Part shown: one piece after another, positions 4,924-28,542 of the stretch
How positions within the stretch are numbered: position 1 is the first letter of the stretch
Layout of the letters: every line of letters starts with the position of its first letter
Source of the DNA: Paramicrosporidium saccamoebae KSL3
Taxonomy: Eukaryota; Fungi; Cryptomycota
Assembly (NCBI GenBank): GCA_002794465.1
Contig: MTSL01000201.1
Location: 16,805 to 45,621 of the forward strand
DNA length: 28,817 nucleotides
Reading direction: 5' to 3'
The notes under the pieces: model-generated
Told to the model about the DNA's origin: nothing
What the model saw: only the letters and a program-made list of their open reading frames with translations
Database searches by the model: none
Translations under genes and position numbers: made by a program

Positions 4924-5640
4924 TTATTCGATCAAGGCCGTCTTTTTCCCCAGTTTCATTCCCTTTCCGGCACGGGTTGTTGTCTGGATTGATGGGCCTT
5001 GGGAAGGTTGCTGTGGTGCCAATGGTGGAGTGTTGAAGCTCATTGTGTCGTTTCGGGGGGAGACTGGCGAATATGCTCCCGGGTAAGCAATGCCCTTTCC
5101 AGCAGAGTTGCGTCGCGCCGTCTCCTTCTTGTCCATCTCAATCTGCTTGATTTTGCGTTTGGCCGCTTCTTTGGCTTCCTGCATTTTATTCTTGGCAATA
5201 ATCTCCTGCACAATCTCCTCCTGACTCTCCATGGCCAGGATGGTGTGCAGTTGTGACATGCTAACATTCTCCCGATAACCTAGGGAGACTACCTCGTCAA
5301 ATGCCAGTAGTATCTCCAAAGAATTATCCTGCAACGACATGGAGTCGTCTGCCGAGCCTCCATACTCGGCAACCACCCGGGTGAGCATGCGCAGAGTGTC
5401 CATATCTTGGAGAATGTTGCTCGCCTTGCTTGTAATAAGCACCAAATAATGTGCCTCCAGCGGCTGATAAATGAACCGGACTTTATCCGTTTCCACAAAT
5501 GTGTGCTGTTGTCCGGCTTGCAGGAGGCGCGGAAATTGTGTAAGGAGCGACTCAATGTGTTGTCTACTTACGCCCAGGAATTGCCGCGAGACTACTATTG
5601 CCCCGCTCCGAGTGCAGAGTGCCGCTGCCAGCAATACCAT
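4924..5640 (-). CDS. RET2: Coatomer delta subunit (delta-COP), longin domain plus helix only, 238 aa, no mu-homology domain
   Basis: MVLLAAALCTRSGAIVVSRQF, QHTFVETDKVRFIYQPLE, LLAFDEVVSLGYRENV, MESQEEIVQEIIAKNK and GKGMKLGKK are delta-COP/ARCN1 hallmarks. A TAA follows five residues after GMKLGKK, with no GT donor available to escape it. Confidence 0.93.
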   Translation of the reverse strand: MVLLAAALCTRSGAIVVSRQFLGVSRQHIESLLTQFPRLLQAGQQHTFVETDKVRFIYQPLEAHYLVLITSKASNILQDMDTLRMLTRVVAEYGGSADDSMSLQDNSLEILLAFDEVVSLGYRENVSMSQLHTILAMESQEEIVQEIIAKNKMQEAKEAAKRKIKQIEMDKKETARRNSAGKGIAYPGAYSPVSPRNDTMSFNTPPLAPQQPSQGPSIQTTTRAGKGMKLGKKTALIE

Positions 5641-7492: not shown

Positions 7493-8860
7493 TTACTGTT
7501 CTTCGGGAACTTCCGGTACAAAGTCTCCACCGTCAGGAATCGGCGAAACATGATCCATTTCCAGATCCGCTCCCAGGCTCAGGTCTGGGACCGACACTTC
7601 CTGCCCGAAAAAATGGTACAGGGCCGGGTCCTTGACGGCATCCAAGAATGGTTGTACATTAACCACTAACTCTCGACGACTCATCACTCTTTTATGGTAG
7701 AGCGAGACGTATGGAATTTGGCGAATGCTGCCGGCCGAGGGCGTAGGTAAGGATGCGCGAAATGAAAAGTCTTGGTATAGCGGTACAGTGAATCGCCGAT
7801 CTCCATGTTTGCGAATCTCGTTAGGCACAGGTGCCTTTTGTCCTTCTGCAACGCTGTGGATGCCGCGTTCAAAATAGTTGGTGGAAAAGCTGGTTTGTCC
7901 TAAAAAGCTGGGATACATCAGATACCATCCTCGGAACAGCATCAACTCGATCAAAATTCGCTTCCAGGAACTAAACCATTCATTCGAGCGGGAATTGGGC
8001 GTCAGTGGAAAATTGGAAATTTGGGTACGGATGGCATAGTATCGCAAAAATTCCTTCCAGTATTTGGCGTGATAGATGGCACCCCAGCTGCATGGTAGCT
8101 GGAAATAGAGAAGACGATGGCGAGGTCCGATTGCATAAGTTGGATTCCATGTCGGCGGTGACCAGGCGTTTGGGGCAGGTCCAATCTCGTCAACACGGGG
8201 AGTGTAGAGGGAGCAACCCATCATCCCGTGATTCTCCCCCTCCACAAGTCGCTTGTATGTGGTCATTGACAAACAATAGAGGGAATACTCAAAAAATCCC
8301 ACTGCTACCTCCGTGTCGTCTTCCAATAGAATGGCATGCTCTTCGTCATCCTTTGGAGTCCAGCCTGACAAGATTGCAGTCGGCATTCCAAGTTTCTGCT
8401 GCCGGATATTGACAATCTTTGGTCCATGTGGCCACTTAAAGTCTTTTACATAGTTGACAACCAAGTTAAGAGGCTCACCGTCCACGTGAAAGTACAGCGG
8501 GACTTCATGGCCAGAGTATTGTGCTCGAAGCAGTGACTCACATAAACGACGGAGGGACTTTTCACGTCTCCAGGCAAAGACGTGGATGGAAATGCGCCAG
8601 CTCATACCATATGTTGCCTTTCCCCAGCGTTGCAACGTACTACTATTACGATATCCTTCGATCTCAAAGTCTTCATGCCCTCCAGGCGACAGCAATCTCG
8701 TCATCTCCGTATCTGTCAAGGCTGGGTGGTCGAGCATAAGATTTTCAGGGCGAATCCATGTCTTTGCTGTATTCCAGATTATTGGAACCCAGTCGAGGAG
8801 CAGAGTTACCAAGATGACAAACTTGATGCTATCTGGAATCACATTGCTAGACAGCTGCAT
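7493..8860 (-). CDS. Uncharacterised GT-A-fold glycosyltransferase-like membrane protein, 455 aa
   Basis: Hydrophobic N-terminal anchor; ISIHVFAWRREKSLRRLCESL; acidic ILLEDD motif; QLPCSWGA and LYPSF...STN motifs recalled from an uncharacterised plant/basal-fungal GT2-like family. The start codon is uncertain. Confidence 0.72.
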   Translation of the reverse strand: MQLSSNVIPDSIKFVILVTLLLDWVPIIWNTAKTWIRPENLMLDHPALTDTEMTRLLSPGGHEDFEIEGYRNSSTLQRWGKATYGMSWRISIHVFAWRREKSLRRLCESLLRAQYSGHEVPLYFHVDGEPLNLVVNYVKDFKWPHGPKIVNIRQQKLGMPTAILSGWTPKDDEEHAILLEDDTEVAVGFFEYSLYCLSMTTYKRLVEGENHGMMGCSLYTPRVDEIGPAPNAWSPPTWNPTYAIGPRHRLLYFQLPCSWGAIYHAKYWKEFLRYYAIRTQISNFPLTPNSRSNEWFSSWKRILIELMLFRGWYLMYPSFLGQTSFSTNYFERGIHSVAEGQKAPVPNEIRKHGDRRFTVPLYQDFSFRASLPTPSAGSIRQIPYVSLYHKRVMSRRELVVNVQPFLDAVKDPALYHFFGQEVSVPDLSLGADLEMDHVSPIPDGGDFVPEVPEEQ

Positions 8861-9082
8861 CGTCGATCACAAACAATATTATCCAAAAATGGTATCATGA
8901 AATACTCCAAAAGTCTCGGATTAATGCAGTTTTTGAAACCATCAAGTCATATCGCTATTCACTTTTTTCTTTGGTGTCTCATAGAGATTGCATTGACAAA
9001 AATACCTTACTATGCATCATGTCCCTGCCTCTGTGCAAAGAGAGGTCAGTCTGGCCGGGACCCCGGCTGTCCCATAGTCATA

Positions 9083-9375
9083 ATGGTAAGTGTTGTTTCC
9101 TACCTCGTACCCTCGAGAACCCGGTCCATCCATTGTTCTCGCGCTCCCTATGCCATTCTTCTTTGCAGAGTACTAATAATATGTAGGATAAAGTCGAATA
9201 CGCCCGCGTCCTCAAGTGTCTGGGCCGTACCGGCTCCCGTGGTGGTGTCACCCAGGTTCGCGCCGAACTCTTGGATACCCAACGCTCCATCGTCCGCAAC
9301 GTCGTCGGCCCCGTCCGTGAGAACGACATTATTACCCTGCTCGAGTCTGAGCGTGAGGCCCGCCGTCTCCGTTAA
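9083..9375 (+). CDS. RPS28: 40S ribosomal protein eS28, ATG followed by a 101-nt intron (9086-9186), 63 aa
   Basis: Not in the ORF track. Exon 2 reads [27 protein letters not shown]...[26 protein letters not shown]; splice signals ATG|GTAAGT...TACTAAT...TAG; strong C-ending codon bias. Confidence 0.97.
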
Positions 9376-9586
9376 ATGCTCGTTGCCTATCCATTCCATA
9401 TACAAGTGAACGAGTGATGCGAGTCGAATGAATAAATTTATATAATCTGAAGCGTCCTTTGCATCAAAGTTTGTGTCTTTGACATGTAGATTGTCTTGGT
9501 ATTATTATTGTGATTCGAACAATAATGATGTGTGCAGAATGAGGGGCACTCGAGGATTGGCCAACCCTTGTCAGATACTCGTCCAT

Positions 9587-10115
9587 ATGGTAAGTGTCCT
9601 TCCACCCTTTCATTATCCATCCATCCATATTTATCCTCCTTGAACGAGTAACTAACCATGTTTAGACTGATATTGACGCCGCTGAGCTTAAGAAGAAGCG
9701 TACCTTCCGCAAGTTCTCCTTCCGTGGAGTTGAGCTCGACGAGCTCCTTGCCATGCCCACCGAGAAGTTTGTGGAGATGCTCCACGCTCGTGCCCGCCGT
9801 CGCTTCCAGCGCGGAATCAAGGGCCGTTCCAACTCCTTGATCAAGAAGCTGCGCAAGTCCAAGGAGGCTGCCGCCGCTGACGGTGAGGGTAAGCCCGAGG
9901 TCGTCAAGACCCATTTGCGCGACATGATCGTCGTCCCGGAAATGATTGGGTCAGTTATTGGTGTTTACAATGGAAAGGTTTTCAACCAGGTCGAGATTAA
10001 GCCCGAAATGGTTGGCTTCTACCTTGGCGAGTTCTCCATCACTTACAAGCCCACTAAGCACGGAAAGCCCGGTATTGGTGCTACCCATTCTTCTCGCTTC
10101 GTCCCTCTCAAGTAA
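9587..10115 (+). CDS. RPS15: 40S ribosomal protein uS19 (S15), ATG followed by a 76-nt intron (9590-9665), 150 aa
   Basis: [20 protein letters not shown]...[16 protein letters not shown]...[18 protein letters not shown]; splice signals ATG|GTAAGT...AACTAAC...TAG. Confidence 0.98.
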
Positions 10116-10271
10116 GGCGACGACCATTGTTCTTCAATAAATACACTTATATTCGACCATGGCGCAATGATACAAGATTCCATTCACATGCAACAGTGTT
10201 TATTAGGGACGGGATTGGTATCTGGATAACAGTGCTACCAGGGTACCTCGAGACTCATCTTCCATCTCAAG

Positions 10272-10314
10272 GCAAGTGTCCGGCATCCATCCATCCATAC
10301 TAACTCTTCTGTAG
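10272..10314 (+). other. Probable 43-nt GC-AG intron in the RPP2 5' UTR
   Basis: AAG|GCAAGTGT...CATCCATCCATCCA-TACTAAC-TCTTCTGTAG|, ending 11 nt before the RPP2 ATG. It has a perfect branch site and the same donor extension as the two neighbouring RP introns. Confidence 0.75.
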
Positions 10315-10325
10315 ACTTTTGACAA

Positions 10326-10655
10326 ATGAAGTACGTCGCCGCCCTTCTCTTGGCCCAACTCGGAGGTAACGAGACCCCCGCTGCTGCCGACATTAAGAAG
10401 ATTCTCTCTTCCGTTGGTATTGAGTCTGATGAGTCCCGCATCAGCGCCCTCCTCGAAGAGGTCTCTGGAAAGAGCGTCGAGGAGCTGATCAATGCTGGCT
10501 CTAGCAAGCTGGCCTCCATGCCCGCTGGTGGTGCCGCCGCTGCTGCGCCTGCTGCTGGAGGTGCTGCTGCCCCCGCCGCCGCCGCCGCTGCTGCTGCTCC
10601 CGCTAAGAAGGAAGAGTCTGAGGAGGAAGAGATGGGATTCGGTCTGTTTGACTAA
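10326..10655 (+). CDS. RPP2: 60S acidic ribosomal stalk protein P2, 109 aa
   Basis: [15 protein letters not shown]...[10 protein letters not shown], Ala hinge, and C-terminal [14 protein letters not shown]. Confidence 0.98.
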
Positions 10656-10864
10656 ATCGTGTCTAATACCTGCCGCTATAATAAAGATTCTATCATTTAT
10701 TATGTCTGGTTAATCCATGGCCATGGCGAGTGGTGTGCATAAGTTTTGTACTATGGTTCAGTCGGTCTAAATCGCATAAGGTGCGGTCACGATTTGGCCT
10801 GTACAGAAGTTGGTGTTTTGGGAGATTTGATGAAAAGCCAAAAACACGCAACGTATAGGTAAGC

Positions 10865-21416: not shown

Positions 21417-22076
21417 ATGCAGCTCACTCTGCCTGCCGTCGCCCTTTTTGTCGCCACCGTCGCCGCCTCCAGCTCCAAGTTCGTACCGGTCGACGCCAAC
21501 GAATTTGAGATACTCGCAGCGAGCTTAAATCAAGACCATGGTCATTCCGTGTTCCCCACGCTGGACCGAAAGGACTTTGACTTGCACCCTGACTATGACC
21601 TCTTCCTAGACGTCCAGAAGCGCTTCCCCGACTCGAACCTTCTCCACTTTGGTAACCCTAACGAGACTCTCCGTGACACGCTCCTTAAGGGTGCCTCCAT
21701 GGAGGTGGCCAAGTCCATTGAGCAGAGATATAAAGCTGACCCGGCTTTCATTGCAAAGGAAATGCTAAATTTTCCCAGTGGAACTACAAATGTGATTCCA
21801 AAGATCCGTAATAATGTCAGAAAGGCTGTTTCTGCTGATTTCCTCGGACGTCTTGGACGTCGGTTCCCCCATCTCGCTCGCTACACGCATAAACAGCTTC
21901 AAGTGGAGTTGTTGAAGGGTATTAAAAATCAAAAAGTCATCGACTACATCAACGGCATGTCTAACAACGACGATACTTGGATTGCAAACACGCTGCTATC
22001 ATCTCCAACCACTCATCCAAGACCCATAGAGAATCTTCGCAGGGTTGTTGTGGCTGAAGTTGCTAAAAGTCCGTAG
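21417..22076 (+). CDS. Orphan secreted protein with two ~77-aa internal repeats, 219 aa
   Basis: Signal peptide MQLTLPAVALFVATVAAS; intronless; strong C-ending codon bias in the first half; no family recognised. Confidence 0.8.
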   Translation: MQLTLPAVALFVATVAASSSKFVPVDANEFEILAASLNQDHGHSVFPTLDRKDFDLHPDYDLFLDVQKRFPDSNLLHFGNPNETLRDTLLKGASMEVAKSIEQRYKADPAFIAKEMLNFPSGTTNVIPKIRNNVRKAVSADFLGRLGRRFPHLARYTHKQLQVELLKGIKNQKVIDYINGMSNNDDTWIANTLLSSPTTHPRPIENLRRVVVAEVAKSP

Positions 22077-26970: not shown

Positions 26971-27111
26971 CCTTCCCAACGATAAACGACATCCCCGGCT
27001 TTGCTCTTTAGTATACTCTCCTCTCAGGTCTTGGGCATTTGTTGTGCTAAATAGAGTTCTTCCCAATGTATTAAATGAACTGAGTGAACCATTATGGGCC
27101 CTTGTAGAAAA

Positions 27112-28542
27112 ATGCCGCACTCCACTCCACGCCTTGTGTCGACCCGTGGTTCGTCCCAATGTGAGGACTTTACTTCCCTGAAGGTGCAGGGATTGTGTCC
27201 TGAAAACGGAGGGTTGTATGTACCCTCGCATTTCCCGCACGTAGGCCTGCCGGTCTTGGAATCGTGGCGGGGTTACAGCTTCCCTGTCCTGGCCCAGGCT
27301 GTCCTCTCCCTCTACCTCCCTGAGACAACCATCTCAACTGACGACTTGAAGCGATTGCTTGAAAAGTCGTTTAGTACGTTTGAAGACGAACGTGTCACTC
27401 CAATCGTGACAATTGATGCAAATTTCCATCTGTTAGAGTTGTATCGCGGTCCGACGCTCTCTTTTAAGGACATTGCTCTACAATTCCTTGGCAATTTCTT
27501 GGAGTATCTCGTCCAAAAGCAGACTGTGGATAAGCCTGTGGTTGTTTTGGGAGCCACAAGCGGGGACACTGGAAGCGCAGCAATTGCGGGCTTAGAAGGC
27601 AAAACGGGCATCAAGGTGGTTATATTGTATCCTGAAGGCAGAGTGTCTCTTGTGCAAGAACTGCAAATGATTACTGGAAATTCTGCCAATGTAACATGCC
27701 TAGCCTGTCCTGGCTCGTTTGATGAGTGTCAAACCTTGGTCAAGGAGGCGTTTGCCGATAAAGATGTGCAGGCTCGATTTCAGTTGCTTGGGATTAATTC
27801 GATTAACATTGTGAGGATTCTGGTGCAGACCGTCTACTACTTTTATTCATATCTACGTTTGGCAAAAAAGATTGGCGATTCTATCGATTATTCAGTGCCC
27901 ACTGGTAACTTTGGCGATATTCTGGCGGGCTACTATGCCAAACGTATGGGTCTACCGTTGGGTCAGCTGGTGATTGCTGCAAACTGTAATGACATCCTGC
28001 CCCGTTTCCTGAACACTGGGACGTACTCTCTAAACAATGTGGTGCCCACCATCAGTCCATCTATGGATATTCAAATCTCGAGCAACTTTGAGCGATACTT
28101 GTACGAATTGTCGGGAAGAAATTCGGAACAAGTAGCCACCTGGATGCATCAATTGAATACAGAGGGCAGTTTTTCCGTTTCCTCCACAGAACTCGCGCAA
28201 GCGAGACGCGACTTTTCTGGATACGTGGCCACCAGAGATGGCTGTCTTGAAACTATTGCGCAAATTGCACGACGCTCAGAGGGAACGATGGTGCTTGATC
28301 CACATTCGGCGATTGGTGTGAGTGCAGCCATTCAGGCCAGAAATCATGATATCCCTATAGTTTCACTGGCAACCGCCCATCCGGCAAAATTCCCTGATGC
28401 TGTTTCCAAGGCACTTGATACTGTGGGAATTAAGAATTCCCCATGGCTGTCACATCCGTCTATAACTGCGCTCGTTGGTAGAGAAAAGAATGTTGGCAAG
28501 TTGAGTATGTTTACGTTGGAAGCTCTTTTGAAATATTTGTAA
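27112..28542 (+). CDS. THR4: Threonine synthase (PLP fold type II), ~476 aa
   Basis: VSTRG, GGLYVP, GPTLSFKDIALQ (PLP Lys), GATSGDTGSAA, VPTGNFGDI, SPSMDIQISSNFER, LATAHPAKF. Start is ATG 27112 or 27094. Confidence 0.95.
   Translation: MPHSTPRLVSTRGSSQCEDFTSLKVQGLCPENGGLYVPSHFPHVGLPVLESWRGYSFPVLAQAVLSLYLPETTISTDDLKRLLEKSFSTFEDERVTPIVTIDANFHLLELYRGPTLSFKDIALQFLGNFLEYLVQKQTVDKPVVVLGATSGDTGSAAIAGLEGKTGIKVVILYPEGRVSLVQELQMITGNSANVTCLACPGSFDECQTLVKEAFADKDVQARFQLLGINSINIVRILVQTVYYFYSYLRLAKKIGDSIDYSVPTGNFGDILAGYYAKRMGLPLGQLVIAANCNDILPRFLNTGTYSLNNVVPTISPSMDIQISSNFERYLYELSGRNSEQVATWMHQLNTEGSFSVSSTELAQARRDFSGYVATRDGCLETIAQIARRSEGTMVLDPHSAIGVSAAIQARNHDIPIVSLATAHPAKFPDAVSKALDTVGIKNSPWLSHPSITALVGREKNVGKLSMFTLEALLKYL

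Follow-up and report, generated by a model that had tools for sequence, protein, structure and literature searches.

A conserved sense-strand CCAT repeat in the 5'-most introns of ribosomal-protein genes of Paramicrosporidium saccamoebae and its relatives

Paramicrosporidium saccamoebae (Rozellomycota) is an intranuclear parasite of amoebae and has been reported as sister to Microsporidia (PMC5701793). The DNA analyzed here, hereafter the window, comprises the last 28,817 nucleotides (nt), up to the 3' end, of the 45,621-nt contig MTSL01000201.1 in assembly GCA_002794465.1 (genome accession MTSL00000000), to which the threonine synthase encoded near that end is assigned in the protein record. 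Reading of the sequence between 8600 and 11200 places three ribosomal-protein (RP) genes, RPS28, RPS15 and RPLP2, in tandem on the plus strand, and each of their 5'-most introns holds a sense-strand (CCAT)2-3 repeat, which is the subject of this work. The genes, introns and repeat elements are as follows, in window coordinates.

9083..9375, plus strand: RPS28 (eS28) gene with a first exon of one codon, ATG (9083-9085), and exon 2 at 9187-9375 including TAA
9086..9186, plus strand: RPS28 first intron, 101 nt, GTAAGTGT...TACTAAT (9171-9177)...TAG
9125..9133, plus strand: CCAT-repeat element 1 (RPS28), TCCATCCAT, 40 nt past the 5' splice site
9587..10115, plus strand: RPS15 (uS19) gene with a first exon of one codon, ATG (9587-9589), and exon 2 at 9666-10115 including TAA
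9590..9665, plus strand: RPS15 first intron, 76 nt, GTAAGTGT...AACTAAC (9650-9656)...TAG
9616..9628, plus strand: CCAT-repeat element 2 (RPS15), TCCATCCATCCAT, 27 nt past the 5' splice site
10272..10314, plus strand: inferred RPLP2 intron in the 5' untranslated region (5'UTR), 43 nt, GC-AG, GCAAGTGT...TACTAAC (10298-10304)...TAG, with the ATG at 10326
10284..10298, plus strand: CCAT-repeat element 3 (RPLP2), CATCCATCCATCCAT, 15 nt past the 5' splice site and adjoining the branch site
10326..10655, plus strand: RPLP2 (acidic P2) coding sequence without intron, 109 amino acids (aa); P0241 is the window's own protein

When spliced, RPS28 and RPS15 yield full-length products that align end to end with eS28 and uS19, and aa 2-63 of the spliced RPS28 protein map to 9187-9372 in a tblastn search. 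Since an in-frame stop lies directly 5' of exon 2 in both RPS28 (TAG) and RPS15, a one-codon first exon followed by an intron is required in each. The GC-AG unit upstream of RPLP2 is read as a real intron because a GT...branch...AG unit occupies the same place, just before the ATG, in eight of the related sequences described below; a ninth, L123, has a GC-AG unit like that of the window.

A first-pass annotation of the window had already placed these introns of 101, 76 and 43 nt at the extreme 5' ends of their genes, with the branch sites and CCAT positions listed above, and our reading of the sequence agrees with it on each of these points. Its further statement that they exceed the 27-36 nt of all other introns holds against the two ordinary introns confirmed by breaks in homologue alignments (31 nt in the cullin gene, and another of 35 nt); these are the only two homology-confirmed members of its list of 19, which our prediction by regular expressions and joining of open reading frames (ORFs) was too noisy to reproduce in full. 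The motif CCATCCAT has five overlapping matches in the 28.8-kb window, compared with a mean of 1.3 in the shuffled window, and all of them are on the plus strand and within the three first introns. Therefore, no other intron of the window holds it, as had been claimed.

Ten relatives from environmental and other public data, with up to ~35% protein divergence, were compared with the window (L002, L123, L124, L126, L127, L128, L129, L133, L134 and L135). The closest match of RPS15 in the protein collection is P0003 (80% identity) on L002, a 952-nt JGI contig that carries RPS28 and then RPS15, and a search with RPLP2 returns graded relatives from 88% down to 64% identity. Given this range of identity and a GC content of the locus between 34% and 61%, the relatives are distinct sequences and not strains. 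The gene order in most of them is RPS28, RPS15 and RPLP2, followed by an NSUN gene and a cullin gene on the opposite strand.

A sense-strand (CCAT)2-5 is present in 23 of the 24 first introns of RPS28, RPS15 and RPLP2 that can be read in these eleven sequences; the sole exception, RPS28 of L128, has degenerate CATCC-like pieces only. The core of element 1 recurs in L002, L123, L126, L127 and L129, element 2 in L123, L124, L126, L127, L128 and L129, and element 3 in L123, L124/L125, L126, L127, L128, L129/L130, L133, L134 and L135. The repeat is kept even in L133, where the GC content is 61%, a different neighbor lies upstream of RPLP2, and five copies of the unit are found. Only two further copies of CCATCCAT occur in the ~66.6 kb of the window and relatives, both antisense, one in a coding sequence of L126 (8541) and the other in the RPLP2 intron of L129.

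When the orthologous introns are aligned with MAFFT, conservation in blocks is limited to the 5' GTA, CCATCCAT and the terminal AG, and beyond these only single columns here and there agree; conservation of the branch site is partial, and the remaining flanks cannot be aligned. At the level of sequence, the repeat is a phylogenetic footprint across the eleven sequences, and neither chance nor a neutral microsatellite nor the recent spread of copies of a single intron can explain it. We conclude that the element is real and under purifying selection, and that it is confined to the sense strand, to the first intron and to the neighborhood of the 5' splice site. The earlier proposal of a functional motif tied to RP first introns is borne out by the same 23 of 24 orthologous introns.

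The restriction to first introns can be seen within RPS15 itself. An internal intron after ...PTEK is found in L124 (~250-282, 33 nt), L126 (~2624-2659, 36 nt), L128 (~2512-2556, 45 nt) and L134 (72 nt), the last of which has a second internal intron of 62 nt, and the repeat is absent from all of these. The first introns of the relatives are 40-159 nt long, compared with 33-45 nt for the internal RPS15 introns of three relatives and 62 and 72 nt for those of L134. RPS15 of P. saccamoebae has lost the internal introns present in relatives and retained the first intron alone.

The first introns also occupy orthologous places in the relatives. The orthologous RPS28 intron follows the start codon in L123, L126, L127, L128 and L129, directly after ATG or, in L128, after ATGCCT. 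The RPS15 first intron lies in the 5'UTR in L127 (6240-6380) and L129 (1346-1494), with the ATG 10-11 nt past the 3' splice site, and the repeat is kept and intronic; in these two sequences the start codon has shifted relative to the conserved intron. In Rozella allomycis (KE561045.1, L131 5480-6140), where RPS15 and RPS30 are arranged divergently and each has an intron directly after the ATG (~42 and ~26 nt), neither first intron contains a CCAT repeat. The element is therefore specific to the Paramicrosporidium-like clade.

The contig L002 (JGI 3300030621, 1-952) has a 22-nt poly(A) run 20 nt past the RPS15 stop, and holds an unspliced RPS28 intron, the intergenic spacer and RPS15 without its intron. 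It may be a polyadenylated complementary DNA of a read-through or multigene transcript that has kept its first intron; such transcripts have been described in microsporidia.

Three types of box are found upstream of the genes, 13-38 nt 5' of the ATG or the 5' splice site in the window and in L123-L135. Those of the window are as follows.

9061..9066, plus strand: CCCCGG box, 25 nt 5' of the RPS28 5' splice site
9563..9573, plus strand: AACCCTTGTCA box upstream of RPS15, with an ACCCTTG(T/C)CA core kept in L123, L126, L128 and L002
10238..10252, plus strand: CCAGGGTACCTCGAG box upstream of the RPLP2 5' splice site, with a CCAGGGTA core kept in L123, L126, L128 and L134

The CCCCGG box lies upstream of RPS28 in every lineage, and upstream of RPS15 and RPLP2 in some, in either orientation (also CCGGGG). 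Its significance lies in the conserved position only, as it is not enriched across the window (7 matches, 9.1 expected). One copy is located 11 nt before an ATG at 21417. The upstream boxes, CCCCGG and the others, are probably core-promoter or start-site elements.

Relative to the splice signals, the repeat is in every case found past the 5' splice site and ahead of the branch site, at a distance of 9-54 nt from the first (23 cases) and 1 to 95 nt from the second across all genes. In RPS28 the distance from the 5' splice site to the motif is 39-43 nt in the five measurable sequences (window, L123, L126, L127 and L129), while the intron varies from 101 to 159 nt, the motif-to-branch distance from 39 to 95 nt, and the distance from the CCCCGG box to the motif from 64 to 81 nt. 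The intron start G[T/C]AAGTGT, which the first-pass annotation had taken as a further common feature, is valid for P. saccamoebae and, outside the window, only for its closest relative L123 and for the RPS28 intron of L126. Other introns of the relatives begin with GTATTAGT, GTAACCGA, GTACACTT and others, GTA alone being conserved, so that the 5' splice-site consensus past GTA is less conserved than the repeat.

Our preferred interpretation, held tentatively and somewhat short of calling it probable, is that this selected cis-element, tandem (CCAU)2-5 in the 5'-most intron of RP genes and specific to the clade of Paramicrosporidium and its relatives, lies close to the splice site and acts on RNA. 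The level of action, the class of protein, the effect on splicing and the extension to other RP genes are inferred. Most likely, (CCAU)n would act in single-stranded form on the nascent pre-mRNA, in its position just past the 5' splice site, and could serve as a landing pad for a sequence-specific single-strand RNA-binding protein. Candidate readers that take ~4 nt per unit would be a KH protein (YCAY or C-rich), a cold-shock protein (CAUC) or a protein with an SR-type RRM (CAUC). The bound protein may help or gate the use of the 5' splice site by U1, and thereby promote the excision of introns of unusual length in a genome where ~30 nt is typical, and several RP genes would come under one common post-transcriptional control point.

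KH domains are known to read YCAY or C-rich tetramers, and cold-shock domains and SRSF3-type RRMs read CAUC. Since the 4-nt tandem unit matches the footprint of such single-strand binding domains, it favors a single-strand binder. Strand and position also support action on RNA: flanks, position and copy number have turned over, yet each of the 23 conserved copies has kept the sense orientation, whereas the neighboring CCCCGG box flips, and in RPS28 the spacing of the repeat varies less from the 5' splice site than from the promoter box. The predicted unpaired state of the repeat in the P. saccamoebae introns points the same way.

Several points weigh against this interpretation. The regulon is built on three gene families that are neighbors in most lineages, the 5' splice sites of P. 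saccamoebae are already near consensus and seemingly in no need of an enhancer, YCAY/CAUC units outside the core are only ~1.5-1.8-fold enriched, and the RNA-level action, like the splicing, intron retention and transcription starts that it involves, is predicted from DNA sequence. In the RPLP2 intron of L129 (2201-2247; also L130), the repeat lies within a perfect 20-bp inverted repeat with a 7-nt loop, which would hide the site from a single-strand RNA binder and double a DNA site. Because the 5'UTRs are tiny, an element at ~+45 to +85 from the promoter box must be intronic, so that a constantly intronic location would fit a DNA element as well. The absence of the repeat from the internal RPS15 introns of L124, L126, L128 and L134 has the same tendency, as does the bounded distance of 44-86 nt between the conserved upstream box and the repeat. 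Likewise, a G-rich or box region lies ~75-80 nt 5' of the repeat in all three genes of the window, though the 5' splice site shifts by 25 nt.

These last observations favor a serious rival, namely that the CCAT/ATGG repeat works at the level of DNA, as a promoter-proximal transcription-factor site or a signal of intron-mediated enhancement (IME). The first intron would house the site for want of room elsewhere, with intergenic promoters of only ~200 bp and 5'UTRs of ~25-40 nt, and the intron would have been retained to carry it. Precedents exist in plants, where telo-boxes and IME motifs occur in first introns, and an inverted second copy, as in L129, is often seen in dimeric DNA sites. CCAT-core YY1 sites are among the factors predicted on ~90% of human RP gene promoters (PMC8047918). 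However, a double-stranded site would not readily account for 23 of 23 conserved copies on the sense strand next to a box that flips, nor for an RPS28 repeat that keeps its spacing from the 5' splice site far more closely than its spacing from the upstream box. Furthermore, the repeat is never seen 5' of the start site or in the exonic part of a UTR, and a 4-bp tandem periodicity would be unusual for readers of double-stranded DNA. We therefore regard a DNA-level element as possible though doubtful.

Far less probable is an RNA structure or autoregulatory hairpin that would mask the start codon or the 5' splice site, with CCAU annealing to the AUG|G boundary of exon and intron or elsewhere within the intron. 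AUGG is indeed the complement of CCAU, and pairings of 5-7 bp can be drawn for RPS28 and RPS15, but pairing with the junction is not supported by folding: the introns and 5' regions of P. saccamoebae fold no better than shuffles (z between -1.4 and +1.0), and the repeat is predicted to be unpaired in the minimum-free-energy folds of the introns. In addition, there is no AUG at the RPLP2 5' splice site. A significant hairpin does form around the repeat in the RPLP2 intron of L127 (z = -2.6), L129 (z = -6.65) and L135 (z = -3.1), those of L127 (7113-7212) and L135 (87-186) being weaker and closed by GGTGTTAG/CTAACACC; most introns of the relatives have no significant fold. Since the repeat is in the stem in L129 and in the loop in L133, there is no common RNA structure, and the hairpin is a structure or palindrome specific to the L127/L129/L135 sub-lineage. 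An Rfam search of 8800-10800 gave no match, which argues against an intronic small nucleolar RNA or other known RNA in this region.

Functionless shared descent, whether as copies of one mobile or duplicated (introner-like) intron or as a neutral microsatellite, is effectively refuted even though in P. saccamoebae both G[TC]AAGTGTCC and ATCCATCCATCCATA occur in the RPS15 intron as well as the RPLP2 intron and the copy number of the repeat ranges from 2 to 5, because the three introns otherwise have no common sequence and no whole-length similarity, are fixed at orthologous positions in all lineages down to 64% RPLP2 identity and must therefore be old, have diverged past alignment in all but the repeat and the splice signals, and carry a repeat of 8-12 nt that, if neutral, would not last in 23 of 24 introns, nor on one strand.

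Returning to the RNA-level interpretation, the first-pass annotation had gone as far as a regulon controlled by splicing, with a Nova-like KH protein as its reader, which is plausible in outline and hypothetical in each of its specifics. The sense strand, the 9-54 nt spacing from the 5' splice site and the 4-nt periodicity fit an RNA element, while three neighboring gene families and the first intron only are a narrow base for a regulon; as for Nova, CCAU fits YCAY formally, but there is no alternative exon, and CAUC readers fit equally. A broader version appears unlikely to us, in which the control signal of the RP regulon has shifted into the transcript, so that (CCAU)n, read by a dedicated RNA-binding protein, gates the splicing of most RP pre-mRNAs and couples ribosome output to growth or life stage. 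If true, such gating would explain why 5' RP introns are retained and long in the genome-reduced lineage leading to Microsporidia.

RP genes keep 5' introns in yeasts and microsporidia, where nearly all others have been lost, and the reason is debated. The element described here is a new conserved first-intron signal of RP genes in a poorly studied sister lineage of Microsporidia, and it indicates that selection has preserved a specific element of 8-20 nt, not the intron as such, over a long time in relatives of Microsporidia. The motif thus provides a concrete handle on the function of retained RP introns. As the annotation had supposed, the element seems to be undescribed: no account of a CCAT repeat in RP introns was found in the searchable literature, where matches to the motif string were primers and small interfering RNAs only. 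We also scanned metagenomes with the pattern ATGGATGGATGGN{3,33}ACACTTRC and discarded the result, since the matches listed included chance hits on bacterial contigs, microsatellites and unrelated fungal introns, with no RP gene downstream.

The motif may also serve as a practical annotation signal for RP genes with one-codon first exons, such as RPS15. RPS15 has no 100% match in the protein collection, unlike RPLP2 and the threonine synthase of the same contig, so the public annotation of GCA_002794465.1 seems to lack the gene; RPS28 (9083-9375) is probably missing likewise. Left unspliced, RPS15 (9587-9643) would terminate after 18 codons, and a gene for Upf2, a factor of nonsense-mediated decay, lies within the window at 11-2671, so that retention of the RPS15 intron could feed this pathway. 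Unspliced RPS28, by contrast, stays open for ~108 codons (ORF 8582-9409).

The window's remaining genes are of the usual eukaryotic housekeeping kind and encode Upf2, Sec62, a cullin, an NSUN-type methyltransferase, a SART-1 family protein, a Mur-ligase-type protein, a class II aminoacyl-tRNA synthetase and a threonine synthase. For the threonine synthase (27094-28542), the best named relatives come from Paenibacillus and diatoms (46-49% identity) and not from fungi, and a horizontal origin or unusual ancestry is possible. A 238-aa ORF on the minus strand (4924-5640), starting MVLLAAALCTRSG, has an N-terminus that may be a delta-COP-type longin domain. It seems to be without the C-terminal mu-homology part, and may represent a truncated coatomer subunit.

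Among known systems, the long microsporidian introns of Whelan 2018 (PMC6349667) come from a related lineage and have an internal conserved region proposed to be functional; a 120-nt RPS23 intron was noted there in P. saccamoebae. Both sets of introns are longer than the miniature introns of their genome (here 101, 76 and 43 nt, compared with 31 and 35 nt), have strong splice signals and an internal conserved block unrelated to the splice sites, and are spread over unrelated genes, and in both sets a function is the proposed reason for their retention. The block itself differs. In the microsporidian introns it consists of CUGA/UGAUGA-like motifs over a stem-loop with a hyper-extended branch site, whereas we find tandem CCAT without a common structure, and neither CTGA nor TGATGA is present in the three introns of the window. 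The hosts also differ, being a poly(A)-binding-protein ORF and RPS23 in that work, and RPS28, RPS15 and RPLP2 here.

Microsporidian RP genes are marked by AAATTT-like and CCC/GGG-like signals upstream of the ATG (Peyretaillade et al. 2009, PMC2803860). These also mark RP genes in compact genomes of the same wider lineage, and the CCCCGG box resembles the CCC/GGG-like motif, to which it may be related. However, they are DNA-level signals upstream of the ATG, whereas the CCAT repeat is intronic, and no AAATTT-like signal was noted upstream of the three genes.

The IME motifs and telo-boxes of plants and the CCAT-core YY1 sites of mammalian RP genes (PMC8047918) are, like the repeat, short and often repeated motifs; they are confined to the 5' part of the transcribed region, or to the first intron, of genes that serve translation and are strongly expressed, and the repeat is indeed confined to the promoter-proximal intron of RP genes. 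The motifs and organisms are different, and neither the sense orientation nor the anchoring to the 5' splice site is required there.

Nova proteins, a metazoan family of KH proteins not known outside animals, read YCAY clusters and control alternative exons in a position-dependent manner. The likeness is that CCAU fits YCAY, that tandem 4-nt units would offer one unit to each KH domain, and that the site is intronic; tandem (CCAU)2-5 occurs in 23 of the 24 first introns, and extra YCAY outside the core is ~1.5-fold enriched. In contrast, the repeat lies in a constitutive first intron of a fungus-related parasite, directly after the ATG or in the 5'UTR, and CAUC readers such as the YB-1 cold-shock domain and the SRSF3 RRM fit it as well as Nova does.

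In the Mer1 regulon of Saccharomyces cerevisiae, a KH protein and the intronic enhancer AYACCCUY promote U1-dependent splicing of meiotic genes with weak 5' splice sites. The block here is CCAUCCAU and not AYACCCUY, the genes are ribosomal and not meiotic, and the 5' splice sites of P. saccamoebae are near consensus. What the two have in common is a short, C-rich intronic element just past the 5' splice site (9-54 nt here), common to a small set of genes. By analogy, Mer1 would be the best functional counterpart of the mechanism that we tentatively favor.

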